From IMG/VR virus record IMGVR_UViG_3300042540_001822, positions 62,001-126,000 of that record: DNA of 64,000 nucleotides; one strand, given 5' to 3'. The notes under the pieces are model-generated. The model had not been told where the DNA came from and made no database searches. It worked only from the letters and a program-made list of their open reading frames with translations. The number at the start of each line of letters is the position of its first letter. Position 1 is the first letter of the stretch. The position numbers and the translations under genes were made by a program. Shown piece after piece: positions 3,453-51,603 of the stretch.

Positions 3453-4043
3453 TTACTTCCGGTTCAAACCAAGTCCTTGAAGAACCATGGTGTTGGTTGG
3501 GCGATTTTCCATGTGGAGAAAAGCCATGTCCAAAACCTCTTCTGACAGGTACCAACCATCAATCACCCTGGAAACAAATCCTGGGGATTTCTTGCAGATG
3601 TCAGAGATTGACTTGATGTCACCTCTCTGCAACCTTTGGTTGACAAAGGCAAGTTTGAAGGTGTACTTGTTGTACCCATTCATCTTTGACTTCTCCTTTG
3701 GCTTCCGGCCCCTTTTTGGGGTAGATGGAGCAATTGGGAAAAGGGTGGCAACTGGAGGTTCTGGAATTTGAACCTTGGGTTTCTCTGCCACCTTAACCAA
3801 TTTTGGTTTGCGAGCAGGCTTGGTGTCGAACTTCTTGATGGAACCTTCAACCTGGGACTTGGTGGATCTTTTGATCCTGCCTTTCAAACCCAGAATCAAT
3901 TTCCGGGAATAAATGGAGGTGAGGGTTCTGCCAAAGAAGTTGGCGATTTCCGCGGAGGAAAATCCTCCTGCGACCATGTTCTTCAGTTGGGTGTCCTGCT
4001 CAGGAGTCCAACGAGAATGATGGGTTTGGGGTCTTTTTGCCAT
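3453..4043 (-). CDS. Two-HTH DNA-binding protein (N-terminal Myb/GcrA-like HTH, C-terminal HTH)
   Basis: RWTPEQDTQLKNMVAGGFSSAEIANFFGRT; C-terminal RGDIKSISDICKKSPGFVSRVI resembles 31428..31631; start moved to MAKRPQ behind TATATTTG at 4086-4093. Confidence 0.65.
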   Translation of the reverse strand: MAKRPQTHHSRWTPEQDTQLKNMVAGGFSSAEIANFFGRTLTSIYSRKLILGLKGRIKRSTKSQVEGSIKKFDTKPARKPKLVKVAEKPKVQIPEPPVATLFPIAPSTPKRGRKPKEKSKMNGYNKYTFKLAFVNQRLQRGDIKSISDICKKSPGFVSRVIDGWYLSEEVLDMAFLHMENRPTNTMVLQGLGLNRK

Positions 4044-4085
4044 ACGTGATGGGTTTAAAGGGTGGAAGAAATAAAATTGACAAGG

Positions 4086-4093
4086 CAAATATA
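4086..4093 (-). promoter_or_regulatory. Bacteroidota-type -7 promoter box TAnnTTTG (representative copy)
   Basis: Also at 2268, 2908, 7717, 9228, 55867, 58894, 61428 (minus) and 20875 (plus), each just upstream of a gene start. Confidence 0.7.
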
Positions 4094-4240
4094 CGATGGT
4101 TTGATTGATAAAAAAAACAAATTTACCAAAAATGCCATTAAAAAATAAAAAAAAATTTATTAATGGACTTAACTTGTTGTAAATGAACAACTTAAGAAAA
4201 CCAGCAAATTAAATTTTTTTTCTGTGCCTACGACAAACAA

Positions 4241-4549
4241 TTATAATAGTTGAATTTCCTTTTTTACATCTAACCAAAATTGGTAGTTACCGAACTCCTC
4301 TTTTAATTTTCCGTTTTCTTCCAAGTAATTCACTATTGGCTCAAATTCAATAGCACTATCTCCAAAAGCTTTTCGCCATTGAGCAACGGTCACCATTTGG
4401 TTATCTTCCATTCCGTCAATTCTAAAAAATCCATAGTGAGCATCTAACCACTTGCCCTCTACAACATGACCACTTAAGTTTGTGAATTTGAATTTAAGTG
4501 AGTTAAATCCTTTTTCTTTAGCATATTCTTGTAGTTCTAAAATTCTCAT
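4241..4549 (-). CDS. Hypothetical protein (start MRILEL)
   Basis: ORF track; the longer upstream extension runs through the repeat element. Confidence 0.7.
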   Translation of the reverse strand: MRILELQEYAKEKGFNSLKFKFTNLSGHVVEGKWLDAHYGFFRIDGMEDNQMVTVAQWRKAFGDSAIEFEPIVNYLEENGKLKEEFGNYQFWLDVKKEIQLL

Positions 4550-4607
4550 TTTAATTGGGTTAGGGGTTGGGCGTGGATGAATGTGCGAGTTATCGGCAAC
4601 CCTACGA

Positions 4608-4868
4608 CTACTCTGTAGCAAGTTTTATAGCATTGACTAAAGGCATTACTCCTTCGCCTCCATTTTGAGAAAGCATAAATTCAGGATAACGACCTTCATC
4701 TGCCAATTTCTTAAATTGTTCTTTTGCCCATTCACAAGCAGCAAGTAATTCATCAGCTACTTTCTTATCTACATACTCGCCTGTTTGGTCATTTGGTTTA
4801 CTTACTTTGTATCCTACAAATAATTGCGGGCTGTAAGTTAATTTTAAAGGTTCTTTACAATTGTTCAT
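4608..4868 (-). CDS. Cassette hypothetical protein
   Basis: Lies between GTTATCGGC (4589) and GCCGATAAC (4910). Confidence 0.7.
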   Translation of the reverse strand: MNNCKEPLKLTYSPQLFVGYKVSKPNDQTGEYVDKKVADELLAACEWAKEQFKKLADEGRYPEFMLSQNGGEGVMPLVNAIKLATE

Positions 4869-5223
4869 TTTATGTTTGTTTTTAAGTTAATAATTCCGAA
4901 AGAAGGGCAGCCGATAACAGCACCTACCAAAAAGGTGGGGGTTGGGGGGTTAGACAAATATGCGAGTTATAAGCAATTATTTTGCCTCAATACCATCCCA
5001 ACAAGACTTACAGCAGTATCCATCAAACTTTTTGTTGTTATGAAAGGTGTGACAGTTACGGCAAAATAACTGTCCGCTTCGCCTTATAACAACAGGTTTG
5101 TGAAATAAACCGCTTTCGATTTGTCCGTAAGTTGGTAGTGATTTGAATGTTCTGTTATTCTTCATATATTTCGTTGTTAAATGTTTACTTCACAAACCTG
5201 CAAACCGTTAGCAGAAATAAAAA

Positions 5224-5379
5224 TTACTCCTGCAATGCTTCCAACTCATATCGTACCAAAGCCATTTCGTCAATTGCTCTGATTTGTTCTTCAATCTTTT
5301 CACGTTCTTTAATCAATCTGATTATTTCTTCGTTGTCTGTTACTTTTGTCCAATCTATCATGTCAGTAATTTTTATCAT
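5224..5379 (-). CDS. Small hypothetical protein MIKITDMIDWTKV...
   Basis: 51-codon ORF read by hand (below the track cutoff). Confidence 0.6.
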   Translation of the reverse strand: MIKITDMIDWTKVTDNEEIIRLIKEREKIEEQIRAIDEMALVRYELEALQE

Positions 5380-5894
5380 TTGTGTTTAATTTTGTATTAG
5401 TGCGCTCTAAACAGAATTTACAATTCCCTTTGTGGGTTAATACTACCAATCAATTTCAATCGAATATTCACCTGCTTCAATTAAACCTCTTTTATAAAGG
5501 TCATTTGCAACAGTATGTATGTCTGGATAAAAATTTCTATCCCACCATAACTTAATACCATAGTCGGTTCTACCAGCAACAGGTTCATTAGGGTCACGTT
5601 CTAACCACTTTTCAAATTTTACACCCATAGTTTTACCATTTATTATTTCAGGTATTTCATCATTCATTTCATCATCACGAGTGTATTCACTTGGTATTGT
5701 AAGATGGAATATTCCCCTTGACCAACAACCATTTTGTTGTTGAAAACTATACGGCTTACCGTAAGTGTCTGAAACTAATTTATTCCAATCACTCACTTCA
5801 ATCATTTTTACATTTTTAATTTTTATCATTTGTGTTTAATTTTGTATTAGTGCGCTCTAAACAGAATTTACAATTCCCTTTGTGGGTTAATACT
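5367..5894. repeat. 78-bp perfect direct repeat (5367-5444 and 5817-5894)
   Basis: Identical taatttttatcatttgtg...gtgggttaatact flanking gene 5443..5829. Confidence 0.9.
5443..5829 (-). CDS. Hypothetical phage protein
   Basis: ORF track. Confidence 0.75.
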   Translation of the reverse strand: MIKIKNVKMIEVSDWNKLVSDTYGKPYSFQQQNGCWSRGIFHLTIPSEYTRDDEMNDEIPEIINGKTMGVKFEKWLERDPNEPVAGRTDYGIKLWWDRNFYPDIHTVANDLYKRGLIEAGEYSIEIDW

Positions 5895-6130
5895 GTTTGG
5901 TTACCCCAATCGCCAAGTAAATACTCGCAACTATCTACCTCTACTATTATTAATGGGTCTTTGTCTTTTCTTACCACAAAGCCGGATGTGTTTACTTCGC
6001 GGCAACCGCAAGAAAGAATAGTCATTAGTAGTGTACTGATAAAGGGGAATGTTGGTTTCATAAGGTGAAATAAGCAATAAGACACAAGATGGCAAGCACA
6101 ACGAATAGTGCCAAAAAAACAGGTAAGCAC
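5816..6130 (-). CDS. Hypothetical (lipo)protein, probable start MKPTFPF
   Basis: Hydrophobic stretch with ILSC lipobox-like motif; VDSCEY...THKGNCKFC. Confidence 0.55.
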   Translation of the reverse strand: MLTCFFGTIRCACHLVSYCLFHLMKPTFPFISTLLMTILSCGCREVNTSGFVVRKDKDPLIIVEVDSCEYLLGDWGNQTVLTHKGNCKFCLERTNTKLNTNDKN

Positions 6131-6216
6131 CCGTATTCTTCAATCATGTGACCGATGGCGTTTAACTGGGATAGAATCATGGGTTTAGGGGTTTGGGGGT
6201 TAGACAAATATGCGAG

Positions 6217-6450
6217 TTATACGCAACCTTGACGAAAAACAATCAACTGACTGCGACATTCTTCATAAAGCCCATAATCATAGTCATCTCCTTTTCTTGA
6301 TTTGTTTAAAAAGAAATCTACTGCGACTATTCCACTTTCAATTGCTAATAATCTATGGGCTTTCATATCACCCACTCCAAATTGTGCTATTAAAAAACTA
6401 TCAATCAATGATTGTGCTATTTCTTTTGCGTGTTCTGTTCTGTTGTACAT
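6217..6450 (-). CDS. Cassette hypothetical protein
   Basis: Its stop codon is supplied by the GTTA core at 6216. Confidence 0.7.
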   Translation of the reverse strand: MYNRTEHAKEIAQSLIDSFLIAQFGVGDMKAHRLLAIESGIVAVDFFLNKSRKGDDYDYGLYEECRSQLIVFRQGCV

Positions 6451-6561
6451 ATTTATTTTGTTTTAAAATTATAATCAAAAAGGCTGCTTATAACAGCAGT
6501 TTGGCAAGATGTGGGGGTTGGGGGAAGGAAAACTGGACAAATAAAGGAGTTACCTGCAAGG

Positions 6562-6936
6562 CTACGAAACTGCATAGACAGACATTCCTATAATAACCAG
6601 AGCGTGTAACAATTGGTCAAATCCAAACACAATCCAATGCCATTTATTAGCAGGTGATTGTAGTGAAGGAAACCAGCCATTCATTCTACCTTTCCAAACA
6701 TCAATTATAAAGTGTGTTACCCATTGGAATATTACTAAGTAAGCCCAATCGTTTGTAAAGCCAATAAACCATCCTAAAACAAGCGACATTAACATAGTGT
6801 GCATTGCAGCGTGAATGAATATTGGAAACAATGGCTTTCCAAGTCGCTTTGCATTAAGCATCCAAGCATTTGATAAATGTGTGTAATCTGCTAAAAAATG
6901 GCAGATAAATAATCCGATTAAAATTTGTGTTTGCAT
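6562..6936 (-). CDS. DUF3307-like membrane protein
   Basis: HFLADY...H...THFIID...GFDQLLH motif pattern. Confidence 0.8.
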   Translation of the reverse strand: MQTQILIGLFICHFLADYTHLSNAWMLNAKRLGKPLFPIFIHAAMHTMLMSLVLGWFIGFTNDWAYLVIFQWVTHFIIDVWKGRMNGWFPSLQSPANKWHWIVFGFDQLLHALVIIGMSVYAVS

Positions 6937-6998
6937 TTGTATTTTAAATTAAATCGTTTAGGGGTTGGACAAATAAACGAGTTAGTGATAATTAAAAA

Positions 6999-7247
6999 TC
7001 ACAAAATTGTACAATTTTCAATTTCATAAACCTTTGGATGTTTTTCTTTTAGTTTATTTATAGCATTTTCATAATTTTCAGCATAAATTAATTCATAACA
7101 AATTGGATATTCGTCACCAATACCTAAACTAAAAGAAAGTAAATAAATATTAACCTTTTGTGAATTTTGTGATTTTTCACTCTCCCTAACATCAGATATA
7201 TTCAATTCCGAGTTTTCTTTAAAACTCTTAATTATGTTCTTTTCCAT
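6999..7247 (-). CDS. Cassette hypothetical protein
   Basis: Reads across the TAAC core (LNISDVRES). Confidence 0.65.
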   Translation of the reverse strand: MEKNIIKSFKENSELNISDVRESEKSQNSQKVNIYLLSFSLGIGDEYPICYELIYAENYENAINKLKEKHPKVYEIENCTIL

Positions 7248-7272
7248 ATTCTATATTTTTTATCATCAACCG

Positions 7273-7680
7273 TTATGAGAAATGTTTTGTCAAAGCATCC
7301 TCTAATATTTGTATAGCTGTTTCTAATCCGCATTCCATCCCTTCTCTCCATTGTCCTTCACTATAATCTAATGGGGGTGATAATTGCCTACTACTTTCAA
7401 GTTGGCTTTGTAAATCTGCCAAAACACTTCTCATAACATCAGGTTGTTGCAATGTGGTTTCGGTGGTATGTGTTACATCTTCCATTTTAAGAAATTTTTC
7501 GTATTTTTCTTCCGTCATTCCGATTGCTTGTCTTTCCCATTCATGTTCACCTTGTTCACCATAAATTTCATATTCAGTCATAGGAGATTTTTTAACATCA
7601 TTGACCATAAAAATAAAAAAAGCAATTCCTATTAAAAGGAGAACAACCAATCCAATAACTGCTAGTAATGTGATATCCAT
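7273..7680 (-). CDS. Membrane-anchored hypothetical protein spanning an attC-like core
   Basis: N-terminal TM; LQQPDVMRS crosses TTCTCATAAC; stop from GTTA at 7272. Confidence 0.7.
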   Translation of the reverse strand: MDITLLAVIGLVVLLLIGIAFFIFMVNDVKKSPMTEYEIYGEQGEHEWERQAIGMTEEKYEKFLKMEDVTHTTETTLQQPDVMRSVLADLQSQLESSRQLSPPLDYSEGQWREGMECGLETAIQILEDALTKHFS

Positions 7681-7825
7681 AAAATTTACTTAGTTTTATT
7701 TTCGTATTTGCGTTTGCAAATATACAAATAAGTTTCGAGATTTCCAAATCTTACCTACAAAAATACATCATATTCCTGGTGTGTGGATGAAGGGAAATTG
7801 GACAAATAAACGAGTTATAGCACAT

Positions 7826-7981
7826 TTAATTATCGCTTAACGACTGGCCGAAAACTATACAAGCTAAACATACAGGAAGATACCATTTCCAATTATCTGT
7901 TTGTGTTATCCAAAGCGATGATAAAATCATCCCACTTGTGATTATTGCAACTGTGTTTAAAAATTTCTTTACTTTTTTCAT
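7826..7981 (-). CDS. Small 2-TM cassette protein MKKVKKFLNTVAII...
   Basis: 51-codon ORF read by hand between cores 7814 and 8006. Confidence 0.55.
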   Translation of the reverse strand: MKKVKKFLNTVAIITSGMILSSLWITQTDNWKWYLPVCLACIVFGQSLSDN

Positions 7982-8066
7982 CGTTTTAAAATTAACGCCT
8001 TATAACAGCAAATTTGGAAAATGTAAAAATTGGTTTCATGGGTTAGGGGTTGGGCGAATGTGCGAG

Positions 8067-8306
8067 TTAGGTGCAAGGCTCTGCCAACCATCCACCACAA
8101 GCAGACCAAACCACCCAACCACCATAAGCAACGTGCATACCGCCAAAAAACTTTGAAACAGATACAGACCAAGTGAAGTAACCTTCTTCAAGTGTTTGTC
8201 CTGTATCAAAATGTTTAAACTTATTACCCAAATGTTTTTTGGCTCGTTCCAAGACAAAAGCCCTGCAACTAACACGGGTTTGGCAAGATTGAGGGGTTGG
8301 TTTCAT
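8067..8306 (-). CDS. Cassette hypothetical protein
   Basis: Starts in the G-rich spacer, crosses the TAAC core, stops at GTTA 8066. Confidence 0.5.
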   Translation of the reverse strand: MKPTPQSCQTRVSCRAFVLERAKKHLGNKFKHFDTGQTLEEGYFTWSVSVSKFFGGMHVAYGGWVVWSACGGWLAEPCT

Positions 8307-8365
8307 GGGTTAGGGGTTGGGGGTTGGGAAGGAAAACTGGACAAATAAACGAGTTATGTGCAATT

Positions 8366-8608
8366 TTAAGACACCCACTTATGACACCTTTTACAAGCGA
8401 TTTCTTTTGGCTCGTTAGTGTCAGGCGTGTATTTCCTATGTCCTACAATTTTGCACCATAAAGGCAAAAAAGTATCTTCAAACATTAGTTTGCGCTGGTG
8501 TTTTATTACAGACCAAAAACGGTCATAGTAATATTTTTTGTTGTCAGGATACTTTCTTGCTAATCGCAGTATCCAAAATAAATCGCAAGTTTCTCTTGAT
8601 GTTGACAT
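8366..8608 (-). CDS. Hypothetical protein with C-terminal CxxxGH...CxxC
   Basis: WCKIVGHRK...CKRCH. Confidence 0.65.
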   Translation of the reverse strand: MSTSRETCDLFWILRLARKYPDNKKYYYDRFWSVIKHQRKLMFEDTFLPLWCKIVGHRKYTPDTNEPKEIACKRCHKWVS

Positions 8609-8691
8609 TTTTTTATTGATTTATGGTTTGGAAAAGTGTGTATTTACCGCATTTTGCAATAATAGTTTTTACTTTAGGCGCGATAAGTTTC

Positions 8692-8973
8692 TTAATTCAA
8701 AATGAATTTAAGAACCAAAATCAAAATTAGAATTAAACCAAACCCAAGAACGCTCACCAAAATTACAATACGTTCTCCCATAGATGATATCCCTTCGAAT
8801 TGGATTTTGCCCTCATCTTGTTTGTATGGAATAAGTTCCTCCCTCATTAATTCCCTCCAAAGTTCGGAATTACACTCTTCATTATCACATAAGAAGAAAA
8901 AACCAAACTCTCCTACATTCACCCTTCTTTGGGCTTGCTCTTGGCACTGACAACAGGTGGATTGTTGTTTCAT
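8692..8973 (-). CDS. Hypothetical Cys-rich protein with C-terminal TM
   Basis: ORF track. Confidence 0.6.
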   Translation of the reverse strand: MKQQSTCCQCQEQAQRRVNVGEFGFFFLCDNEECNSELWRELMREELIPYKQDEGKIQFEGISSMGERIVILVSVLGFGLILILILVLKFILN

Positions 8974-8996
8974 AAGGATATGTGGGTTTAATTGTG

Positions 8997-9069
8997 TGAT
9001 CCCGACTGGACTCGAACCAGTAACCTACTGCTTAGAAGGCAGTTGCTCTATCCATTGAGCTACGGGACC
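8997..9069 (-). tRNA. tRNA-Arg (anticodon TCT)
   Basis: GGTCCCGTAGCTCAATGGATAGAGCAACTGCCTTCTAAGCAGTAGGTTACTGGTTCGAGTCCAGTCGGGATCA folds as a cloverleaf with CTTCTAA loop and GTTCGA T-loop. Confidence 0.95.
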
Positions 9070-9289
9070 TGGATTTATTTTGGATCCATTTTTTCGTATT
9101 CTTTTTTGACCTGTGCCTGAAAATTTTCCACGTTTGCAGAGAATTTACCGTAGGCAGCTCCTGACATGAAAGCAAGAATTCCAAAAAGAATGAAGGTAAT
9201 TAGTAACAGCATAAGTTTGTTTTTTTACAAATATAAGAAAAAAACTAATATGATCGATTTCCAAATCAAAAAAATGCGGTCCTACGACC

Positions 9290-9667
9290 CTACACATCGG
9301 GATTAATTTCAGCCCAAAACAACTTTACAACACTTCCCTTTATTTCTCCATACACACAGTCACTAAATTCGTAGGCTGGCACAAAGGAATTCAAATCTAC
9401 CCAAGCCCAATCAGCATCATGGTTTGGGAATTGGGCCATGTACTGACCCTCTTCGTTTACCATCAATAATTCTCTTTTTTTGTCATCCAAAAAAGTTCCC
9501 CCGGTGTATATGTGTTTTTTCACATCCAAAATTGGTGGTGTTAGCATTTCGGGCTTACAAACATTGTCCTCTAATAAATTGCGGAAAAAAGAAATTGGAT
9601 TCATGTTACTTATACAGCAGAACCAACATTTGATTTCGTTTCCACCTCCTTTAAAACCTCGATCCAA
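9290..9667 (-). CDS. Hypothetical protein (start probably MNPISF)
   Basis: ORF track. Confidence 0.6.
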   Translation of the reverse strand: MDRGFKGGGNEIKCWFCCISNMNPISFFRNLLEDNVCKPEMLTPPILDVKKHIYTGGTFLDDKKRELLMVNEEGQYMAQFPNHDADWAWVDLNSFVPAYEFSDCVYGEIKGSVVKLFWAEINPDV

Positions 9668-9825
9668 TACAGATGCATCACAATCAACTCTGGGTGGATT
9701 TCGGTACAGTTAATTAAGGATTGTATGTTTTTTAAACAATCATTTACTGTTTTTTTACCCAACATCTCTTTTGCCTTCTGGGAGGGAGAAAGTGCAGGCA
9801 AATCAAACAAAACAGATTGGCTCAT
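9610..9825 (-). CDS. Hypothetical protein
   Basis: ORF track; overlaps the sigma factor stop. Confidence 0.6.
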   Translation of the reverse strand: MSQSVLFDLPALSPSQKAKEMLGKKTVNDCLKNIQSLINCTEIHPELIVMHLYWIEVLKEVETKSNVGSAV

Positions 9826-10706
9826 AGACTTGGTTCAAATTGAATTCTTCTTGCTCCGGATTTCATTTTCGTGATCGCCTTACGGTGAATGATCTCTGCC
9901 TTCTGTTTTGAAATTCCAAATTTCAAACCAATTTCTATGTATGTCAATGGGTAATCATATCCCACTCCATGATGTAATGTCACGATGTCTTTTTCTAAAG
10001 GAGTTAAAGAAAGCAACAACTTATTAACCATCTTCTTTTCGTCATCCTTGTTCAACACATCTTCTGGTGTATCTTCACCGGAATCAATTATCTCATACAG
10101 GTTAGAGTCTTCTGCTGTTTCTAGGGGCTTGTCCAAAGAGACAGACACAAAATTTTGGCCTGTCACAAATTTAAAGGTATCAAAGGTTAGATTTTCTCTT
10201 TTGAGTTCTTCCTTCATGTATTCAAATACCTCCATCTCTGTGGCCTCCCTACCAATCCTAGCAAAAAGGTAACATTTCGCATCCTCTGCTTTTTGAACTA
10301 AACGTAATTGATTGGGCGGGATGTACACTGTTCTTTTAAACTTCTGTATGTAAAGAATCATTTCCTTTCGGATATGCCAAACAGCAAAGGAGATAAATCT
10401 AAATCCCTTGGTTGGATCAAATCTATCTGCTGCATCCACCAGCCCCACGTTGCCCACAGCCACCATCTCCTGCTGTGATTCTTCATTACTAGCATACATC
10501 TTGGCAACCGATAACACAAACCTCAAATTTGAGGTAACCAGCTTTTCTCTGGCTTTGGCATTACCATTAAAGGCCTGGGTGGCTATTTCGTATTCCTCAT
10601 CTGGTGACATGATGGGTATTCGGGATACCTCCCTCAAATACACCTGGGTTGAAAACTTCTGGCTGAGAGTAAATGTCTCAACTTTTTTAAATTGTCTCAT
10701 GCCCAT
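9822..10706 (-). CDS. Sigma-70 family RNA polymerase sigma factor (RpoD/RpoS-like, regions 1.2-4)
   Basis: YLREV, AREKLVTSNLRFVLSVAK, GLVDAADRFDPTKGFRFISFAVWHIR, region-4 HTH. Confidence 0.9.
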   Translation of the reverse strand: MGMRQFKKVETFTLSQKFSTQVYLREVSRIPIMSPDEEYEIATQAFNGNAKAREKLVTSNLRFVLSVAKMYASNEESQQEMVAVGNVGLVDAADRFDPTKGFRFISFAVWHIRKEMILYIQKFKRTVYIPPNQLRLVQKAEDAKCYLFARIGREATEMEVFEYMKEELKRENLTFDTFKFVTGQNFVSVSLDKPLETAEDSNLYEIIDSGEDTPEDVLNKDDEKKMVNKLLLSLTPLEKDIVTLHHGVGYDYPLTYIEIGLKFGISKQKAEIIHRKAITKMKSGARRIQFEPSL

Positions 10707-14322: not shown

Positions 14323-14428
14323 TTGGGTAAAGCGAGATTTATTTTAATTTTGGGGCCGGGGTTCTTTCGGTGTTCCCAATTTTGTCCCCCTCGACTTCGA
14401 ATGACTGCGGTTGGGAATATATAAGGAC

Positions 14429-15247
14429 ATGAAACACCTCCAATCCTTTTCCCTGTTCGAAGCCCAAACTTCTGTCCTGACCACAGACCAAGAGGCATTT
14501 TTGAATGAATACATCAAAGGAGCATGGTCGGTCAATCCAACAACAGGTCTGGTCGATGTGGAGGGAAATTTTGCTTGTAGTTCCAAAAGGCTGAAGTCTC
14601 TGTCGGGCATCTCGTTCGGACATGTGAGTGGGAATTTCGCCTGTTTCAACAACCAACTGACCTCCCTGAAAGGAGCACCACAGACGGTGGGTGGGGGTTT
14701 CGATTGTTCTTATAACGATCTCACTTCCCTGGAAGGAGCACCACAGACGGTGGGTGGGGATTTCAATTGCTTTTATAATTACAATCTTAAATCCTTGGAA
14801 GGAGCACCTCGGACTGTGGGTGTGAATTTCGATTGTTCTTATAACGATCTCACTTCCCTGGAAGGAGCACCTCAGACGGTGGGTGGGGATTTCAATTGCT
14901 TTTATAATTACAATCTTAAATCCTTGGAAGGAGCACCTCGGACTGTGGGTGTGAATTTCCTTTCTGACAAATTCCAATTAGAAGAAGGCGAATGGAACAT
15001 GCAAGGATGGCTGGAGGTTTTGAACACAGGAACGGAAGAAGCCAAAAAATTGATTTCCACCCTGCCATGGCTACAACCGGACTGGTGGAACTTGGAACTC
15101 CAACGGGATCCCGGTAAAACAGTTCATCTATTGGGGTCTTTATGGAAACATATGCCAAAGGACATGCAATCTGCAATTAAGATTCCCGGGGGATATGAAG
15201 ATGATTTCGAACTGTTTTCTGGATTTAACGAGCTGGGCTTGTTTTAG
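14429..15247 (+). CDS. LRR-like variable-module protein 1 (5 modules)
   Basis: FxCxxNxLTSLEGAPQTV repeats; start moved to MKHLQ; internal 129-bp duplication. Confidence 0.9.
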   Translation: MKHLQSFSLFEAQTSVLTTDQEAFLNEYIKGAWSVNPTTGLVDVEGNFACSSKRLKSLSGISFGHVSGNFACFNNQLTSLKGAPQTVGGGFDCSYNDLTSLEGAPQTVGGDFNCFYNYNLKSLEGAPRTVGVNFDCSYNDLTSLEGAPQTVGGDFNCFYNYNLKSLEGAPRTVGVNFLSDKFQLEEGEWNMQGWLEVLNTGTEEAKKLISTLPWLQPDWWNLELQRDPGKTVHLLGSLWKHMPKDMQSAIKIPGGYEDDFELFSGFNELGLF

Positions 15248-15262
15248 AGGATATATAGGAGA

Positions 15263-15886
15263 ATGAAACACCTCCAATCCTTTTCCCTGTTCGAAGCCCA
15301 AACTTCTTTCCTGACAACCGACCAAAAGGAATTTTTAAATGAATGCACCAAAGGAGCATGGTCGGTCAACCGGCAGACCGGTCTGGTCAATGTGGAGGGG
15401 AATTTTGACTGTAGTTTCAAATCACTAAAGTCTCTGCCTGACATCTCGTTCGGACACGTCAGTGGTCATTACGGCTGTTTCAACAACCAACTGACCTCCC
15501 TCGAGGGAGCACCCCAGACGGTAGGCGGGGGTTTCTACTGTTCCAACAACAAACTGACCTCCCTCGAAGGATCCCCACAGACTGTGGGTGGGGATTTTTG
15601 GTGTGACGAATTCGAATTAGATTCAGGCAAATGGAACATGCAAGGATGGGTGGAAGTTCTGAACACAGGAACACCAGCAGCCCAAAAATTGATTTCCACC
15701 CTTCCATGGATCCAACCGGACTGGTGGAACCTGGAACTCCAACGGGATCCCGGGAAGACGGTTCATCTATTGGCCACTGCATGGAATCACATGCCAAAGG
15801 ACATGCAATCTGGAATTAAGATTCCTCGGGGATATGAAGGTGATTTCGAACTGTTTTCCGGATTTGACGAGCTGGGCTTGTTTTAA
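15263..15886 (+). CDS. LRR-like variable-module protein 2 (2 modules)
   Basis: Paralogue; ends SGFDELGLF. Confidence 0.9.
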   Translation: MKHLQSFSLFEAQTSFLTTDQKEFLNECTKGAWSVNRQTGLVNVEGNFDCSFKSLKSLPDISFGHVSGHYGCFNNQLTSLEGAPQTVGGGFYCSNNKLTSLEGSPQTVGGDFWCDEFELDSGKWNMQGWVEVLNTGTPAAQKLISTLPWIQPDWWNLELQRDPGKTVHLLATAWNHMPKDMQSGIKIPRGYEGDFELFSGFDELGLF

Positions 15887-15903
15887 AGGATATATATAAG
15901 GAC

Positions 15904-16716
15904 ATGAAACACCTCCAGTCCTTCGTACTTTTCGAAGCCCAAACTTCTGTCCTGACACCCCGCCAAAATAAATTTTTGAATGGATGCACCAAAGAAACAT
16001 GGTCGGTCAACCGGCAGACTGGTCTGGTCGATGTGAAGGGAAATTTTGACTGTAGTTTCAAATCACTAAAGTCTCTGCATGGCATCTCGTTCGGAAACGT
16101 CAGTGGTCATTTTGGCTGTATATACAACCAACTGACCTCCCTGAAAGGATCACCCCAGACGGTGGGTGGGAATTTCAACTGTTCCACCAACCGACTGACT
16201 TCTCTAGAAGGAGCACCGCAGAAGGTGGGTGTGAGTTTCGACTGTGGTGTAAACAAATTGACCTCCTTGAAAGGATCACCACAGACGGTGGGTGGGATTT
16301 TCTCCTGTTACAACAACCGACTGACCTCTCTCGAAGGAGCACCTCAGAAGGTTGGCTCGAATTTTTCTTGTACTTTTAACGATCTCACTTCCCTGAAAGG
16401 AGCACCTGAGACGGTGGGTGGGTATTTTACGTGTGACGAATTCAAATTAGATTCGGGTGAATGGAACATGGAAGGATGGGTGGAGGTTTTGAACACAGGA
16501 ACACCAGCAGCCCAAAAATTGATTTCCACCCTTCCATGGCTCCAACCAGACTGGTGGAACTCGGAACTCCAACGGGATCCAGCGAAAACAGTTCATCTAT
16601 TGGGGTCTTCATGGAAACATATGCCAAAGGACATTCAATCTGCAATTAAGATTCCTCGGGGATATGAAGGTGATTTTGAATTGTTTTCTGGATTTGACGA
16701 GCTGGGGTTGTTTTAA
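15904..16716 (+). CDS. LRR-like variable-module protein 3 (5 modules)
   Basis: Paralogue. Confidence 0.9.
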   Translation: MKHLQSFVLFEAQTSVLTPRQNKFLNGCTKETWSVNRQTGLVDVKGNFDCSFKSLKSLHGISFGNVSGHFGCIYNQLTSLKGSPQTVGGNFNCSTNRLTSLEGAPQKVGVSFDCGVNKLTSLKGSPQTVGGIFSCYNNRLTSLEGAPQKVGSNFSCTFNDLTSLKGAPETVGGYFTCDEFKLDSGEWNMEGWVEVLNTGTPAAQKLISTLPWLQPDWWNSELQRDPAKTVHLLGSSWKHMPKDIQSAIKIPRGYEGDFELFSGFDELGLF

Positions 16717-16731
16717 AGGATATATAGAGGG

Positions 16732-17544
16732 ATGAAACACATCCAATCCTTTTCTCTGTTCGAAGCCCAAACTTCTGTCCTGACCACAGACCAAGAGGCA
16801 TTTTTGAATGAATTCACCGACGGGACCTGGTCGGTTAATCCAACAACTGGTTTGGTGGACGTTCAGGGTGATTTTAACTGTTTCGGTCAAGGTCTGAAAT
16901 CACTTCGAAAAATATCTTTCGGTCATGTGAGTGGGTATTTCTCCTTTTCCGACAACCAACTGACCTCCCTGGCAGGGGCACCCCAGACGGTGAGTGGGCA
17001 TTTCTTCTGTTCCCGCAACCAACTGACCTCCCTTAAAGGAGCACCCCAGACGGTGGATGGGCCTTTCTACTGTTACAAAAACAAACTGACCTCCCTCGAA
17101 GGAGCACCTCAGACGGTGTATGGGGATTTCCGGTGTTACAATAACCAACTGACCTCCCTAGAAGGAGCACCACAGACGGTGGGCGGGGATTTCTCTTGCT
17201 ACAACAACCAACTGACCTCCCTGGAAGGAGCACCTCAGACGGTGGGTGGGTATTTTACGTGTGACGAATTCCAATTAGATTCGGGTGAATGGAACATGGA
17301 AGGATGGCTGAGGGTTTTGAAAACAGGAAAAACAAAAGCCAAAAAATTGATTCTCACCCTGCCATGGCTACAACCGGACTGGTGGAACTCGGAACTTCAG
17401 CGGGATCCAGGGAAAACCGTTCATCTATTGGGGTCTTTGTGGAAACATATGCCAAAGGACATGCAATCTGGAATTAAGATTCCTCGGGGATATGAAGGTG
17501 ATTTTGAATTGTTTTCTGGATTTGACGAGCTGGGGTTGTTTTAA
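16732..17544 (+). CDS. LRR-like variable-module protein 4 (5 modules)
   Basis: Paralogue. Confidence 0.9.
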   Translation: MKHIQSFSLFEAQTSVLTTDQEAFLNEFTDGTWSVNPTTGLVDVQGDFNCFGQGLKSLRKISFGHVSGYFSFSDNQLTSLAGAPQTVSGHFFCSRNQLTSLKGAPQTVDGPFYCYKNKLTSLEGAPQTVYGDFRCYNNQLTSLEGAPQTVGGDFSCYNNQLTSLEGAPQTVGGYFTCDEFQLDSGEWNMEGWLRVLKTGKTKAKKLILTLPWLQPDWWNSELQRDPGKTVHLLGSLWKHMPKDMQSGIKIPRGYEGDFELFSGFDELGLF

Positions 17545-17559
17545 AGGATATATAGGAGA

Positions 17560-18384
17560 ATGAAACACCTCCAGTCCTTCGTACTTTTCGAAGCCAAAGC
17601 TGCTCGTCTTCCTTCTGGACTTACTCAAAGTCAAGAAAATTTCTTGAACCGACACACCAGAGGAACATGGTCTGTTAATCCAACGACCGGTCTGGTAGAT
17701 GTTTTTGGGGAATTTTACTGTTTCGGTCAAGGTCTGAAATCACTTCGAAAAATATCTTTCGGTCATGTGAGTGGGAATTTCGACTTTTCTTCCAACAAAC
17801 AAACCTCTCTGAAAGGAGCACCCCAGACGGTTAAACGTCAATTCAATTGTTCTGATAACGAACTGACCTCCCTGGAAGGAGCACCTCAGGAGGTAGGTAG
17901 GAGTTTCTACTGTTACAAAAACAAACTGACTTCCCTAGAAGGATCACCTAAGACTGTAGGCGGTGATTTCGACTGTGCTATCAACCATCTGACTTCCCTT
18001 AAAGGAGCACCACAAACGGTGGATGGTCGTTTCTACTGTGATAGGAACAAATTAACCTCCCTGGAAGGAGCACCTCAGACGGTGGTTGGGAATTTTAAGT
18101 GTGACGAATTCGAATTAGATTCAGGTGAATGGAACATGGAAGGATGGCTGAGGGTTTTGAAAACAGGAAAAACAAAAGCCAGAAAATTGATTTGCACCCT
18201 TCCATGGCTACAACCGAACTGGTGGAACTCTGAACTTCAGCGGGATCCCGGTAAAACAGTTCATCTATTGGGGTCTTTGTGGAAACATATGCCAAAGGAC
18301 ATGCAATCTGGAATTAAGATTCCTCGGGGATATGAAGGTGATTTTGAATTGTTTTCTGGATTTGACGAGCTGGGGCTGTTTTAA
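17560..18384 (+). CDS. LRR-like variable-module protein 5 (5 modules)
   Basis: Paralogue. Confidence 0.9.
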   Translation: MKHLQSFVLFEAKAARLPSGLTQSQENFLNRHTRGTWSVNPTTGLVDVFGEFYCFGQGLKSLRKISFGHVSGNFDFSSNKQTSLKGAPQTVKRQFNCSDNELTSLEGAPQEVGRSFYCYKNKLTSLEGSPKTVGGDFDCAINHLTSLKGAPQTVDGRFYCDRNKLTSLEGAPQTVVGNFKCDEFELDSGEWNMEGWLRVLKTGKTKARKLICTLPWLQPNWWNSELQRDPGKTVHLLGSLWKHMPKDMQSGIKIPRGYEGDFELFSGFDELGLF

Positions 18385-18399
18385 AGGATATATAAGGGC

Positions 18400-19278
18400 A
18401 TGAAATATCTCGTTTCATTTGTCCTTTTCGAAACCGAAAAGACTTCAGGCCTGACACCCGGCCAAGAGGCATTTTTGAATGAATGCTCCAGCAAGACCTG
18501 GTCGGTTAACCGGCAGAATGGTCTGGTCGATGTGCAAGGAGGTTTTACTTGTAGTTTCAAATCCCTAACGTCTCTGCCTGACATCTCGTTCGGAAACGTC
18601 AGTGGTCATTTCATCTGTTCCAACAACCAAATGACCTCCCTTGATGGAGCACCACAGAAGGTGGGTGGGATTTTCTCCTGTGCCGGCAATCAGCTGACCT
18701 CCCTAAAAGGAGCAACCCAGAATGTGGGCGGGAATTTTTGGTGTCACCAAAACCAGCTGACCTCCCTGGAAGGAGCACCCCAGACGGTGAACGGGAATTT
18801 CCACTGTTACTACAACCGACTGACCTCTCTCGAAGGAGCACCCCAGACGGTAAAAAAGAATTTCCACTGTTACAAAAACCAACTGACCTCACTTAAAGGA
18901 GCACCTGAGACGGTGGGTGGGAATTTTGAATGTTCCAACAACAAACTCCAATCCCTGGAAGGAGCACCTCATACGATAAACGGGGGTTTTCGGTGTGACG
19001 AATTCCATTTATATTCAGGCAAATGGAACATGCAAGGATGGGTGGAGGTTTTGAACACAGGAACACCAGCAGCCCAAAAATTGATTTCCACCCTTCCATG
19101 GATCCAACCGGACTGGTGGAACCAGGAACTCCAAAGGGATCCTGGGAAGACGGTTCATCTGTTGTCTACCATGTGGAACCACATGCCAAAGGACATGCAA
19201 TCTGCAATTCAGATCCCTCGGGGATATGAAGGTGATTTTGAATTGTTTACTGGATTTGACGAGCTGGGCTTGTTTTAA
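18400..19278 (+). CDS. LRR-like variable-module protein 6 (6 modules)
   Basis: Paralogue. Confidence 0.9.
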   Translation: MKYLVSFVLFETEKTSGLTPGQEAFLNECSSKTWSVNRQNGLVDVQGGFTCSFKSLTSLPDISFGNVSGHFICSNNQMTSLDGAPQKVGGIFSCAGNQLTSLKGATQNVGGNFWCHQNQLTSLEGAPQTVNGNFHCYYNRLTSLEGAPQTVKKNFHCYKNQLTSLKGAPETVGGNFECSNNKLQSLEGAPHTINGGFRCDEFHLYSGKWNMQGWVEVLNTGTPAAQKLISTLPWIQPDWWNQELQRDPGKTVHLLSTMWNHMPKDMQSAIQIPRGYEGDFELFTGFDELGLF

Positions 19279-19295
19279 AGGATATATATAGGAGA

Positions 19296-20171
19296 ATGAA
19301 ACACATTCAATCCTTTTCCCTGTTCGAAGCCCAAACTTCTGTCCTGACAACCGACCAAGAGGAATTTTTAAATGAATGCACCGACGGGACCTGGTCGGTT
19401 AATCCAACAACAGGTCTGGTAGATGTTAAAGGAGATTTTGATTGTAGTTCCAAAAGGCTGAAGTCTTTGTCGGGCATCTCGTTCGGACATGTCAGTGGGT
19501 ATTTCTTCTGTTCCAACAACCAATTGACCTCCCTGAAAGGAGCACCTCAGACGGTGAGTGGGACTTTCTTCTGTACTGACAACAAACTGACCTCCCTGAA
19601 AGGAGCACCACAGACGGTGGGTGGGAGTTTCTACTGCGGTGAAAACCAATTGACCTCCCTGGAAGGTGCACCCCAGACGGTGAGTGAGGATTTTTGGTGT
19701 CACCAAAACCGACTGACCTCCCTCGAAGGAGCACCCCAGACGGTGGGTGGAAGTTTCAACTGTATGGACAACCGGCTGACCTCCCTGGCGGGAGCACCTC
19801 AGACGGTGGATGTGGATTTCAATTGCTTTCATAACAATCTTAAATCCTTGGAAGGAGCACCTCAGAAGGTGGGTAGGAATTTTAAGTGTAACGGATTCCA
19901 ATTAGATCCAGGCAAATGGAACATGGAAGGATGGCTGGAGGTTCTGAACACAGGAACACCAGCAGCCCAAAAATTGATTCTAACCCTTCCATGGCTACAA
20001 CCGAACTGGTGGAACTCTGAACTTCAGCGGGATCCCGGTAAAACAGTTCATCTATTGGCCACTGTATGGAATGACATGACAAAGAACATGCAATCTGCAA
20101 TTAAGATTCCTAAGGGATATGAAGATGATTTCGAACTGTTTTCTGGATTTGACGAGCTGGGCTTGTTTTAA
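19296..20171 (+). CDS. LRR-like variable-module protein 7 (6 modules)
   Basis: Paralogue. Confidence 0.9.
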   Translation: MKHIQSFSLFEAQTSVLTTDQEEFLNECTDGTWSVNPTTGLVDVKGDFDCSSKRLKSLSGISFGHVSGYFFCSNNQLTSLKGAPQTVSGTFFCTDNKLTSLKGAPQTVGGSFYCGENQLTSLEGAPQTVSEDFWCHQNRLTSLEGAPQTVGGSFNCMDNRLTSLAGAPQTVDVDFNCFHNNLKSLEGAPQKVGRNFKCNGFQLDPGKWNMEGWLEVLNTGTPAAQKLILTLPWLQPNWWNSELQRDPGKTVHLLATVWNDMTKNMQSAIKIPKGYEDDFELFSGFDELGLF

Positions 20172-20186
20172 AGGATATATTAGGAC

Positions 20187-20810
20187 ATGAAACACATCCA
20201 ATCCTTTTCTCTGTTCGAAGCCCAAACTTCTGTCCTGACAACCGACCAAGAGGAATTTTTAAATGAATGCACCGACGGGACCTGGTCGGTCAACCGGCAC
20301 ACTGGTCTGGTCAATGTGCAAGGAGGTTTTGCTTGTAGTTTCAAAAGTCTAACGTCTCTGAATGGCATCTCGTTCGGACACGTCAGTGGTAATTTCTTCT
20401 GTTTCTACAACCATCTGACCTCCCTGGAAGGAGCACCTCAGACGGTGGGTGGGGATTTCTTCTGTGATAAAAACAGATTAACCTCCCTGGAAGGAGCACC
20501 ACAAGAAATAAATGGTCGATTTCTTTGTGATGAATTTGAATTAATCAAGGGTAAATGGAACATTGAAGGATGGGCGGAGGTTCTGAACACGGGAACGGAA
20601 GAAGCCAAAAAATTGATTCTCACCCTTCCGTGGCTCCAACCGGACTGGTGGAACTCGGAACTCCAACGGGATCCAGGGAAGACGGTTCATCTATTGGCCA
20701 CTGTATGGAAGAGCATGCCAAAGGACATGCAATCTGCAATTAAGATCCCTCGGGGATATGAAGGTGATTTCGAATTGTTTTCTGGATTTGACGAGCTGGG
20801 TTTGTTTTAA
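20187..20810 (+). CDS. LRR-like variable-module protein 8 (2 modules)
   Basis: Paralogue. Confidence 0.9.
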   Translation: MKHIQSFSLFEAQTSVLTTDQEEFLNECTDGTWSVNRHTGLVNVQGGFACSFKSLTSLNGISFGHVSGNFFCFYNHLTSLEGAPQTVGGDFFCDKNRLTSLEGAPQEINGRFLCDEFELIKGKWNIEGWAEVLNTGTEEAKKLILTLPWLQPDWWNSELQRDPGKTVHLLATVWKSMPKDMQSAIKIPRGYEGDFELFSGFDELGLF

Positions 20811-20910
20811 AGGATAATCGCAGATCCGGAGTGAATTTTTTTTGGAAAAATTCGAAAGTTTGAGGATTTATATGTAATTTTGGGGTAAACACACTTCAAA
20901 AAAAATTGTA

Positions 20911-25319: not shown

Positions 25320-25528
25320 TCGTTTGTTTTTACCTAGGTGAACAAAATTTTCCTTCGGTTGATTTTTTTTCTGTATATGTATCCTCTAAATCCCAGAAGT
25401 TGTCATGGTGTAAAACAAATTGAAATGCGGAATGTTCCCCTTTATTTGGCAGGCCGGGGTTCTTGGAGATCCGACGATTTTAACCCCCATTGTTAAGAAG
25501 TGTCAGTTGTTCCTCTGATATATAGGAC

Positions 25529-26410
25529 ATGAAACATCTGATTCCATTTAGGATCTACGAATCCCAGACGACTTCAGGTCTTACGGAGGGACAGAAGGAA
25601 TTCTTGAACAAATACACACGAGGAACCTGGTCCGTCAATCCAACAACAGGTTTGGTGGATATAGATGGGTATTTTGATTGTTCAGGTAGTAAAATTAAAA
25701 ACTTTATGGGAATTCAATTTGGTGAAGTGACACGATCTTTTGATTGCGAGTCTAACCTTTTAACTTCTTTGGAAGGATCGCCCAGGTTCGTGCGTGGTAC
25801 TTTTAGATGTAACAATAACTCTATCACCTCTTTGGAAGGATCTCCCCAAACTGTAGGGGGGGATTTCCTTTGCAGCAAAAACTCACTTTCTTCGATTAAA
25901 GGAGCTCCAAGAAAAGTTGGTGAGGATTTTTGGTGCAATGATAATGATATAGAAACACTAGAGGGTGGTCCAGATATTGTTGGTAAAGATTTTGAATGCG
26001 AAAATAACCATCTGAGCTCTCTTAAGGGATCACCAAAAACGATTCCGGGAGATTTTTATTGTTATGGAAACCCTTTATTAATTTCTCTCGAAGGAGCACC
26101 ACAGACTATAGATGGGATTTTCTTCCACGACAAAATAAAAATGAAAAAAGGAGAATGGAACATGCGAGGATGGGTGGAGGTTCTGAACACAGGATCAGAA
26201 AAAGACAAAAAATTGATTCTCACCCTGCCATGGCTCCAATCGGACTGGTGGAACTTGGAACTCCAAAGAGATCCTGGGAAGACGGTTCATCTATTGGCCA
26301 ATGTATGGAATCTTATTCCAAAGAACATGCAATCTGCAATTAAGATTCCTAAAGGATATGAAGATGATTTCGAACTGTTTTCCGGATTTAACGAGCTGGG
26401 TTTGTTTTAA
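25529..26410 (+). CDS. LRR-like variable-module protein 9 (6 modules)
   Basis: Paralogue with more divergent modules. Confidence 0.9.
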   Translation: MKHLIPFRIYESQTTSGLTEGQKEFLNKYTRGTWSVNPTTGLVDIDGYFDCSGSKIKNFMGIQFGEVTRSFDCESNLLTSLEGSPRFVRGTFRCNNNSITSLEGSPQTVGGDFLCSKNSLSSIKGAPRKVGEDFWCNDNDIETLEGGPDIVGKDFECENNHLSSLKGSPKTIPGDFYCYGNPLLISLEGAPQTIDGIFFHDKIKMKKGEWNMRGWVEVLNTGSEKDKKLILTLPWLQSDWWNLELQRDPGKTVHLLANVWNLIPKNMQSAIKIPKGYEDDFELFSGFNELGLF

Positions 26411-26424
26411 AGGATATATAGAAC

Positions 26425-26997
26425 ATGAAACACCTGAAATTATTCGAAAATTTCACGAAAGATGATTTGGATAATTTGATTTCGGGATTTGAGGAACTCG
26501 GAATTAACAAAAAGAAATTTCTCAGAATTAAATTTGTTGGTATTTACGTAACTGAATCTGATAGAACAAATGAAGCTGATTTCAGATTTCATAATGATAG
26601 AATTTTGAGGATCCCAATTTCGGAATTTGAAAAAGAAGATTTAGAACCCGGCAAAGAATCTTTTTCGAAAACCCTCCAAGATTCGGTTTTATATGCCATC
26701 AGAAATGGTGAAGCCGAAGTAAATCCAGATTGTGTGGGTGAATTATATATTGGCGAAACTTTTGATCCTAGTACCTTAATCTCCGTCGCCGAAAAAACAC
26801 AAACCCTGGATGGATTTTGGGATCTTGTCACCCAATATTTATATGATGTTGGAACTGATATCATTTATGACCATTTCAGTAATGAAGGTATAATGGAAGA
26901 ATTCGCTGATTTTTTCTTTGACGAATGCAAGAATTTAAAGCCAAAATTTTGGATAGAAAAAGAAGGTGAAAAATGGGGGGAAATCAGTAAAATATAA
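26425..26997 (+). CDS. Acidic protein with N-terminal LISGFEELG motif
   Basis: MKHLKLFENF...DLDNLISGFEELGI. Confidence 0.8.
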   Translation: MKHLKLFENFTKDDLDNLISGFEELGINKKKFLRIKFVGIYVTESDRTNEADFRFHNDRILRIPISEFEKEDLEPGKESFSKTLQDSVLYAIRNGEAEVNPDCVGELYIGETFDPSTLISVAEKTQTLDGFWDLVTQYLYDVGTDIIYDHFSNEGIMEEFADFFFDECKNLKPKFWIEKEGEKWGEISKI

Positions 26998-27001
26998 AGA
27001 C

Positions 27002-27754: not shown

Positions 27755-27769
27755 AGGATACATAAGGAC

Positions 27770-28963: not shown

Positions 28964-29071
28964 TTAATGCCCAGATAGAAAATTATTATTGGATAGAAGC
29001 AAAAAGTTATTTTGCTGAGAAGATATATAAATTTATTTGCTAAAATAAAAAAAAATTAAACACAAACAAAT

Positions 29072-32578: not shown

Positions 32579-32633
32579 GGTTCAATTTTTTGATATATAT
32601 ATTTTTGGTGATTGAAAATGTATAATCTAATTT

Positions 32634-33458: not shown

Positions 33459-33467
33459 TAATAAAAA

Positions 33468-50822: not shown

Positions 50823-50836
50823 AGGATATATAAAAA

Positions 50837-51589: not shown

Positions 51590-51603
51590 AGGATATATAA
51601 ACC

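Follow-up and report, generated by a model that had tools for sequence, protein, structure and literature searches.

We found that, in a giant lake-water phage, small genes are built from exchangeable pieces that meet exactly at the 4-nt marks TAAC and GTTA at the feet of integron-like DNA hairpins, so that one protein body turns up behind many different start pieces in related phages. The analysed window is a 64,000-nt stretch (positions 62,001 to 126,000) of the 219-kb, 88%-complete IMG/VR phage contig IMGVR_UViG_3300042540_001822, which we assign to a lake-water phage of roughly 220-250 kb; the host is probably a Bacteroidota, judged only from the promoter type. A small-gene array on the minus strand (window 4.2-8.6 kb, plus genome 26-52 kb) alternates coding segments, which we term payloads and which run from GTTA to TAAC on the gene strand, with linkers, which run from TAAC to GTTA. 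We give this reading, in which payloads and linkers are exchanged at both cores between related phages, a probability of about 0.6; all comparisons use metagenome contigs, no excision or exchange event was observed directly, and how the pieces are exchanged remains inferred.

Guided by a sequence-only reading, which had proposed that the cores supply stop codons and lie inside ORFs, that the interior of the site doubles as translation start and N-terminus, and that homology might break at the core, we first re-examined the cores themselves (plus-strand coordinates throughout). Stop codons lie inside a minus-strand TAAC in ORF 6217..6450 (core 6216-6219), ORF 7273..7680 (7272-7275) and ORF 8067..8306 (8066-8069), and a minus-strand GTTA is read through in frame in ORF 6999 (7187-7190), ORF 7273 (7434-7437), ORF 8067 (8270-8273) and ORF 4977 (5087-5090), confirming the observation. 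A bare 4-mer is at chance level, so significance rests on other evidence. The 17-mer around TAAC has 8 copies in the window against 0.27 expected and 20 copies in the genome, all in one orientation, and CTGNTGTTAK occurs 12 times in the genome, all on the minus strand, 9 of them within 26-71 kb. TAAC lies at or within 16 nt after the stop in 31 of 106 array ORFs against 29 of 291 elsewhere (p = 6e-6). By contrast, in-frame TGTTA near N-termini is only weakly enriched (18 of 106 against 30 of 291, p = 0.054), an nhmmer profile of the GTTA half scores the in-ORF sites only at E = 1.7 and 4.6 genome-wide, and the TAAC at 7272-7275 is not a copy of the 17-mer repeat but opens a different linker class (TAAC-GGTTG-ATGATAAA...).

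Next, to ask whether the linkers are defined by structure, we folded them as single-stranded DNA and scanned for hairpins. Intact linkers fold into attC-like hairpins with a 4-bp TAAC/GTTA foot, an asymmetric 5 x 1-2 nt internal loop (G[GT]TT[GT] opposite T or TT), a 10-19 bp stem and a terminal loop of 11-150 nt that can hold a Bacteroidota-type promoter, a start codon and a translated N-terminal leader, which reads through the 3′ stem arm and GTTA into the payload; TAAC gives a stop codon in one frame. A strict scan with fixed spacers found 8 hairpins on the gene strand, 0 on the other strand and 0.7 in shuffles, plus 22 further distinct copies with unrelated stems in relatives, whereas a loose scan did not exceed shuffles and hairpins around GTTA were not generally enriched (14-20% in every region). 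Stem sequence differs between copies but stays complementary: 98.5% of cells are paired, 8 of 11 stem pairs are changed on both sides, and the covariation score is 0.606 against 0.178 in shuffles (0 of 500), with slid controls giving 30-59% paired. Only one intact hairpin lies in the window, at 5087-5210, and model R1 finds none there; most copies within 6216-8306 are of a promoter type and do not fold (z near 0). Many window copies are inferred to be hybrids in which a promoter 18-mer replaces the 5′ arm and only the 3′ arm plus GTTA remains. An Rfam scan of 3500-10000 found only a tRNA.

The intact hairpin linker (5087..5210, minus strand) comprises TAAC (5207-5210), a 6-nt spacer, an 18-bp stem, a loop of about 80 nt holding ATG 5163-5165 and 25 leader codons, a 2-nt spacer and GTTA (5087-5090); its fold z-score is -2.7 and those of its homologues range from -2.4 to -4.4. 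Changes in the leader by codon position are 21:13:67, mostly synonymous, indicating that it is translated. It opens the Cys-rich payload of ORF 4977..5165 (4966..5090), whose stop TAA at 4977-4979 is followed by TAAC at 4966-4969. The 26-aa leader is conserved in 20 proteins and followed by at least 7 unrelated payloads, and the homologue P0027 carries this payload behind another N-terminus. Identity profiles of related contigs bound this linker exactly at both cores.

The payload of ORF 8067..8306 (8066..8273, minus strand) shows the reciprocal pattern. From the GTT codon onward it is conserved in 16 proteins that carry at least 10 unrelated leaders, it is followed by at least 6 different downstream linkers in relatives, and its identity profiles are sharp at both cores (8270-8273 and 8066-8069); an RNA-run contig covers 8064-8293. 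It is preceded by a promoter-type linker (8270..8356) running from TAAC (8353-8356) through the conserved 18-mer with a -7-like box, a C-rich leader and ATG 8304-8306 (codons MKPTP...) to the L′ half (GCCAAACCCG-T) and GTTA (8270-8273). This copy does not fold as a whole hairpin; the same ATG module starts a different gene in L005, L010 and others (L numbers denote related contigs and scaffolds). It is followed by a promoter-type linker (8003..8069; profile-search E = 0.0011, module C) with a 15-codon upstream ORF that ends just after GTTA (8003-8006), the next gene having its own ATG at 7979-7981.

ORF 7273..7680 is preceded by a variant promoter linker (7681..7817, minus strand) that starts at TAAC (7814-7817) with the 18-mer, carries a second canonical TAnnTTTG box and ends at the ATG of this ORF; the homology of L003, L008, L012 and L017 starts exactly at this TAAC. 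Inside the ORF, an in-frame relic linker (7434..7475), from TAAC (7472-7475) to GTTA (7434-7437), joins the TM-anchored N-part to a C-terminal payload (7272..7437) whose stop is the TAA inside TAAC (7272-7275). This C-terminal domain is joined to at least 4 unrelated N-termini; homology segments start at 7475 (L028), 7454 (L027) and 7446 (L026), the last running 7446-7271, from core to core, and L168/L169 also bear on this linker. Scaffold L027 is a chimera of a genome-51-kb N-part and the C-part of the window, with the crossover inside GCTGTTATGA and only about 10 nt in common. The sequence-only reading had taken the TM anchor joined to a cassette domain as its example of a new fusion; however, the anchor is not itself a swapped leader, as the 'anchor-less' homologue P0002 simply has its start codon changed from ATG to ATT and L166/L167 keep the anchor DNA, and the supported junction is the relic linker. 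No relatives of ORF 7273 were found in viral contigs.

The short linker that follows (7187..7275, minus strand) consists of TAAC (7272-7275), GGTTG, ATGATAAA..., ATG 7245-7247, 19 leader codons and GTTA (7187-7190). Its 5′ arm occurs in the hairpin copies g30366 and g28068 and in L166, and its leader also occurs on another payload at genome 26527-26736. The payload of ORF 6999..7247 (6981..7190), with stop TGA at 6999-7001 followed by TAAC (6981-6984), has a homologue in L008/L015 that is 95% identical after the core region and about 50% identical before it, and this homology ends at 6966, right after the 18-mer. A short promoter-type linker (6937..6984) then leads from TAAC (6981-6984) to the ATG of the DUF3307 gene 6562..6936. 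The remaining promoter-type linkers, all on the minus strand, lie at 6491..6552 (TAAC 6549-6552 to GTTA 6491-6494, with a local terminator-like hairpin around GTTA; E = 4.7e-7), at 6181..6219 (no GTTA half; its TAAC, 6216-6219, holds the stop of ORF 6217..6450, and ATG 6178-6180 starts a 40-aa TM protein), at 4915..4969 (TAAC 4966-4969 to GTTA 4915-4918; E = 0.0023) and at 4553..4592 (TAAC 4589-4592 to ATG 4550-4552, no GTTA half). Among the cassette ORFs, Pfam and PHROGs searches matched only DUF3307/phrog_2470 and phrog_27943, and the ESM Atlas gave no usable hit for ORF 8067; a search for cultured relatives through the sigma factor reached about 30% identity at best.

Together, these results support the proposal that homology breaks at the core and that the interior of the site acts as translation start and N-terminus. 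Across related contigs, 14 of 49 homology-end clusters lie within 5 nt of a core against 4.2 +/- 2.0 expected. Notably, GTTA is read in two different frames, as V or as L, indicating a DNA-level core and leading us to reject a conserved Val as a peptide motif of the junction. Sharp boundaries could partly reflect selection for working in-frame joins, and hairpins after stop codons followed by T-rich sequence could simply be terminators. Assembly chimeras are unlikely, because the shared cores are far shorter than assembler k-mers and the same combinations recur in several samples (for example, P0039 on 22 contigs). A recombination core in the enzymatic sense is not shown: no tyrosine or serine recombinase, Y1 transposase, TnpB, reverse transcriptase or GIY-YIG was found in the 88%-complete contig (PF00589, PF00239, PF01541, PF13392, PF00078, PF01797 and PF07282 absent; one weak HNH match at genome 146 kb), and no PF00589 match was found in three related partial records. 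We infer that exchange is directed by the hairpin foot and could be done by an unidentified structure-specific recombinase or nuclease or by copy-choice template switching of a polymerase stalled at the stem, and that ordinary homologous recombination between the longer conserved promoter blocks adds shuffling like that of the PeSL cassettes of T4-type phages.

We considered whether these are canonical integron attC sites, forming a cluster of attC sites lacking an integrase (CALIN) in a virulent phage, with cassettes moved by a host or missing integrase cutting at G|TT. The architecture matches (R″-spacer-L″...L′-spacer-R′ with conserved AAC/GTT, variable paired stems and loops, placement at the 3′ end of small ORFs), the arrays at genome 27-39 kb and window 4.5-8.4 kb satisfy the CALIN definition of at least two sites in one orientation within 4 kb with no intI nearby (PMC4889954), and CALINs in virulent phages, including a Polaribacter phage, are recombined by IntI1 (PMC9892861). 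However, payloads do not travel with their own downstream site, as boundaries lie at both R″ and R′; the internal loop appears one-sided, and in the hairpins recovered here (4-6 x 1-2 nt internal loops) stems are essentially perfect with no extrahelical bases seen; loops carry promoters, start codons and translated leaders; and there are dozens of sites, against 2-4 in the published phage CALINs. Although the sites were not scored with attC models, we regard this explanation as unlikely. In fused integron gene cassettes (PMC4670013), loss or decay of the recombination site also lets two cassette ORFs be read as one protein, as in ORF 7273..7680, but there it is a rare accident, whereas here reading through the site is the regular way payloads obtain their start codon.

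Equally unlikely is that the linkers are only PeSL-type regulatory cassettes, conserved for expression and shuffled by ordinary homologous recombination, as in T4-type phages (PMC2839356, PMC4122927). PeSLs likewise repeat a promoter plus stem-loop in hyperplastic regions full of small ORFans, end with the start codon of the next gene and are associated with insertions, deletions and replacements between close relatives and with circular or permuted joints. In agreement, the 18-mer block is identical in 25 other viral contigs, the L008/L015 breakpoint lies right after it, and a 'goes back' joint between two promoter-type linkers (8317->4945) appears in two lake runs. On the other hand, hairpin-type linkers share only about 9 and 7 nt at their feet while their stems and loops are unrelated, boundaries are sharp at 4-nt cores with unrelated neighbours, the hairpin encloses the promoter and start codon rather than preceding them, and the modules extend into coding sequence and create chimeric proteins. 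Moreover, there is no sigma-70 -35/-10 signal above background (20 sites against 20.7 expected); the boxes resemble TAnnTTTG of Bacteroidota (PMC6847099, PMC9723704), and TATTTGT is the most enriched 7-mer on the gene strand of the array (44 against 16).

Less likely still, the hairpins could be RNA-level elements (terminators, RNase III sites or translational regulators) with TAAC and GTTA only marking the edges of functional units. Hairpins sit directly after stop codons and are followed by TTGTTAT-type T-rich sequence, one copy scores as a terminator, and the stems enclose start codons, which could gate translation; yet transcripts from the promoter inside the 5′ arm or the loop would lack the 5′ arm, and this view gives no reason why unrelated neighbours join at the very same nucleotide on both sides in many phages. 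Last, miniature hairpin transposons (MITE-like) inserting at TA and duplicating it (TA|AC...GT|TA) would fit small, TA-flanked elements with arm-like inverted repeats and many copies in one orientation, but are very improbable, as arm sequences are not conserved between copies, only kept complementary, payload ends are identical across relatives whichever linker follows, and no transposase family was found in the 88%-complete contig (no PF01797 or PF07282 match).

How phage hyperplastic regions gain, lose and re-combine their many small ORFan genes is an old open question, to which PeSL-mediated homologous shuffling and a handful of attC clusters in phages are two partial answers. This locus joins them in an unexpected way: the hairpins look like attC sites but hold the expression signals and the first 10-50 codons of the next gene, and, as a result, every exchange changes a protein as well as the gene order. 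The pattern recurs in many independent lake metagenomes, and the phage itself occurs in at least 16 runs. Tentatively, this may be a cassette-exchange system of lytic giant phages that does not depend on an integron integrase, in which exchange at both hairpin feet would routinely build new chimeric proteins from a pool of leaders and payloads, amounting to programmed domain shuffling of accessory (possibly host-takeover or anti-defence) proteins. If an enzyme acts at the hairpin foot, it is a new recombination activity; if none does, this is a clear natural case of structure-guided copy-choice recombination.

The contig of which the window forms bases 62001-126000 is a single, linear IMG/VR virus record of 219,475 bp with 35.8% G+C and an estimated completeness of 88%. 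Megablast of this region against cultured phages matched only a tRNA-Arg gene (anticodon TCT) on the minus strand at window 8996-9069, at the edge of the array, which is 87-89% identical to tRNA-Arg genes of marine cyanophages. A sigma-70-family gene (294 aa, minus strand, 9822-10706) lies directly downstream of the array region and has about 30% identity to anything cultured and to proteins of uncultured gut phages and Gram-positive phages. Next to the array lies a large repeat-protein gene family of about 15 paralogous genes of 200-400 aa on the plus strand (window 14400-20900, 25500-29000, 32600-33500 and 50200-52300), each containing runs of 63-nt (21-aa) tandem repeats. The stretch 4200-9000 is present almost whole in at least 16 lake-water metagenome runs.

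All genes between 4.2 and 9 kb lie on the minus strand; motifs are written on the gene strand and coordinates are those of the plus strand. One cassette, at 6562-6936, encodes a DUF3307 membrane protein (PF11750; phrog_2470, 'moron/host takeover' category), and another, at 5443-5829, matches phrog_27943 of unknown function. First, we tested the sequence-only reading, which held that cassette cores supply stop codons and are read through at the start of the next ORF, and found its coordinates to be exact. The stops of ORFs 6217, 7273 and 8067 are the TAA of a gene-strand TAAC at 6216-6219, 7272-7275 and 8066-8069, respectively, whereas ORFs 6999, 7273, 8067 and 4977 read in frame through a gene-strand GTTA at 7187-7190, 7434-7437, 8270-8273 and 5087-5090. 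The 17-mer around TAAC (TAACTCG..TATTTGTC) has 8 copies in the window against 0.27 expected, and the contig has 20 copies, all in one orientation, in two small-gene regions (genome 26-39 kb and window 4.5-8.4 kb). TAAC at or just after a stop codon is three to four times commoner in these regions than elsewhere (31 of 106 against 29 of 291, p = 6e-6). The TAAC at 7272, however, belongs to another linker class and not to the 17-mer family. A further linker class, without a GTTA end, is represented by a 75-nt direct repeat at 5363-5440 and 5820-5895 that starts with TAAC after a stop codon and ends with the start codon and first codons (MIKI) of ORFs 5224..5379 and 5443..5829.

To determine what the 17-mer is, we examined word enrichment on the gene strand of the array. 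The most enriched 7-mer is TATTTGT (44 against 16), which resembles the TAnnTTTG -7 box of Bacteroidota promoters (PMC6847099, PMC9723704), and the host is inferred only from this promoter type; sigma-70 consensus sites are at background. The exact 18-mer occurs in 25 other viral contigs, and in many of these it is followed by a C-rich leader and ATG AAA CCA ACC CC..., the true start of another conserved gene, so that the ATG inside window copies 8340 and 8053 is a genuine start module. The plus strand opposite the C-rich 5′ leader of promoter-type linkers (window 8307-8330; also genome 28572) reads GGGTTAGGGGTTGGGGGTTGGG, a G-quadruplex-type motif that is one of only 4 such motifs on the plus strand of the contig. 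As whole units, these promoter-type copies do not fold (z about 0).

Next, we compared module junctions in relatives, all of which are metagenome contigs (L handles denote nucleotide sequences and P handles proteins). Homologues of ORF 7273 keep the C-terminal domain but carry at least 4 unrelated N-termini. Scaffold L027 is 85% identical to genome 51238-51112 and then 97.8% identical to window 7454-6558, and the two donors share only GCTGTTATGA at the switch. The ORF 8067 payload is conserved from its GTT codon in 16 proteins with at least 10 different leaders, and every homologue ends with TAAC as its stop and is then followed by one of 6 unrelated linkers. Conversely, a 26-aa leader of ORF 4977 is conserved in 20 proteins and followed by at least 7 unrelated payloads. 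The homologue of ORF 6999 in L008/L015 is 95% identical after the core region and about 50% identical before it, and downstream homology ends right after the 18-mer. Column-wise identity profiles show the change exactly at TAAC and at GTTA on both sides of both module kinds, and homology-end clusters fall within 5 nt of a core 14 times out of 49, against 4.2 +/- 2.0 by chance. Several leaders recur on other payloads inside this same genome, which also contains, outside the window at genome 40418-40660 (L164:15418-15660), an ORF made almost wholly of MVKSRAES-type octapeptide repeats.

The DNA of the ORF 4977 leader family showed that the conserved block starts at TAAC well upstream of the ATG and that its 5′ part is complementary to the last leader codons. 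Folded as single-stranded DNA, the block from 5087 to 5210 forms a TAAC/GTTA foot, a one-sided bulge of 4-6 nt, an 18-19 bp stem and a loop of about 80 nt that contains the start codon, with a fold z-score of -2.7 in the window and -2.4 to -4.4 in the homologues. In L159 and L161 the three bases outside the cores also co-vary. A strict scan requiring TAAC, 4-6 nt, a stem of at least 8 bp, 1-2 nt and then GTTA revealed 8 copies on the gene strand of the contig, none on the other strand and 0.7 on average in shuffles, together with 22 further distinct copies in related contigs, whose stems are unrelated in sequence. In the gap-free 44-nt class, 98.5% of cells pair, 8 of 11 stem pairs change on both sides, and the covariation score is 0.606 against 0.178 in shuffles (0 of 500 reach it); sliding the partner by 1-3 columns drops pairing to 30-59%. 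A covariance model of that class finds five copies in genome 25-45 kb and none in the window. Loops of the longer classes contain TTTG...TAnnTTTG promoters, or a start region (AAACTTAAA...ATG) with a leader ORF. Notably, the 3′ halves of the promoter-type copies in the window (GCCAAACCCG-T-GTTA) match the 3′ arm of hairpin copies such as genome 33824 and L129, and these copies are therefore inferred to be hybrids in which the promoter 18-mer has replaced the 5′ arm.

To probe whether the core is a DNA mark or a peptide motif, we examined its reading frame. GTTA is read as GTT-A.. (Val) in most fusions but as ..G-TTA (Leu) in others, indicating that the core is conserved as DNA. The leaders are nevertheless translated: in the ORF 4977 leader family, 8 of 13 variable codons change only synonymously, and changes by codon position are 21:13:67. 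The first residues of the ORF 8067 payload are conserved as protein even in distant homologues, and no start codon of its own lies there. In ORF 7273..7680, an in-frame relic linker, from TAAC (7472-7475) to GTTA (7434-7437), joins a TM-anchored N-part to the conserved C-domain; homology to L028 begins at 7475, and homology to L027 and L026 begins at 7454 and 7446. The sequence-only reading had offered the TM anchor of this ORF, joined to a cassette domain, as an example of a new fusion. However, the apparently anchor-less homologue P0002 still has the anchor DNA, with its start codon changed from ATG to ATT, and the anchor is therefore not a separately swapped leader.

In Logan contigs, examined without raw reads, assemblies break or switch partners at the linkers, with loose ends at 4900-4940, 5198-5233, 6530-6565, 6992, 7713 and 8254-8332. 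A metatranscriptome run yielded contigs over 5183-5412 and 8064-8293, which is weak support for expression because DNA carry-over cannot be excluded.

Together, these results show the architecture and the precise exchange at both cores, but not the process. We favour exchange directed by the hairpin foot, through an unknown enzyme or through template switching at a stalled stem. No tyrosine or serine recombinase, Y1 transposase, TnpB, reverse transcriptase or GIY-YIG enzyme was found in the 88%-complete contig, and no PF00589 match was found in three related partial records (of the five records searched, one is probably unrelated and another uncertain). Homologous recombination fits events between promoter-type blocks, which include the L008 break and a joint of window 8317 to 4945, in which Logan contigs of two independent lake runs (X14 and X16) join two promoter-type linkers 3373 nt apart in 'goes back' order; this joint may be an excised circle, a tandem duplication or a permuted gene order in a relative. 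Homologous recombination does not fit junctions that share only 4-10 nt. In integrons, a cassette keeps its own attC and crossovers occur only at G|TT of R′ (PMC4889954), whereas here payload and linker part company at TAAC as well, so that a defining integron feature is lacking although the site architecture is attC-like. Terminator or RNA-regulatory roles may coexist with exchange at the foot.

CALINs with 2-4 attC sites have been found in 17 phages, and five of six sites tested from virulent phages were recombined by IntI1 (PMC9892861). PeSLs join a stem-loop, a promoter and the next start codon, and mediate shuffling in T4-type phages (PMC2839356, PMC4122927), and fused integron cassettes are rare accidents (PMC4670013). 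The present system shares features with each, but differs in that the expression signals and a translated leader sit inside the hairpin, both feet serve as boundaries, and chimeric proteins are the regular outcome. We regard it as a variant related to these known systems, with a real chance that it is a distinct recombination system.
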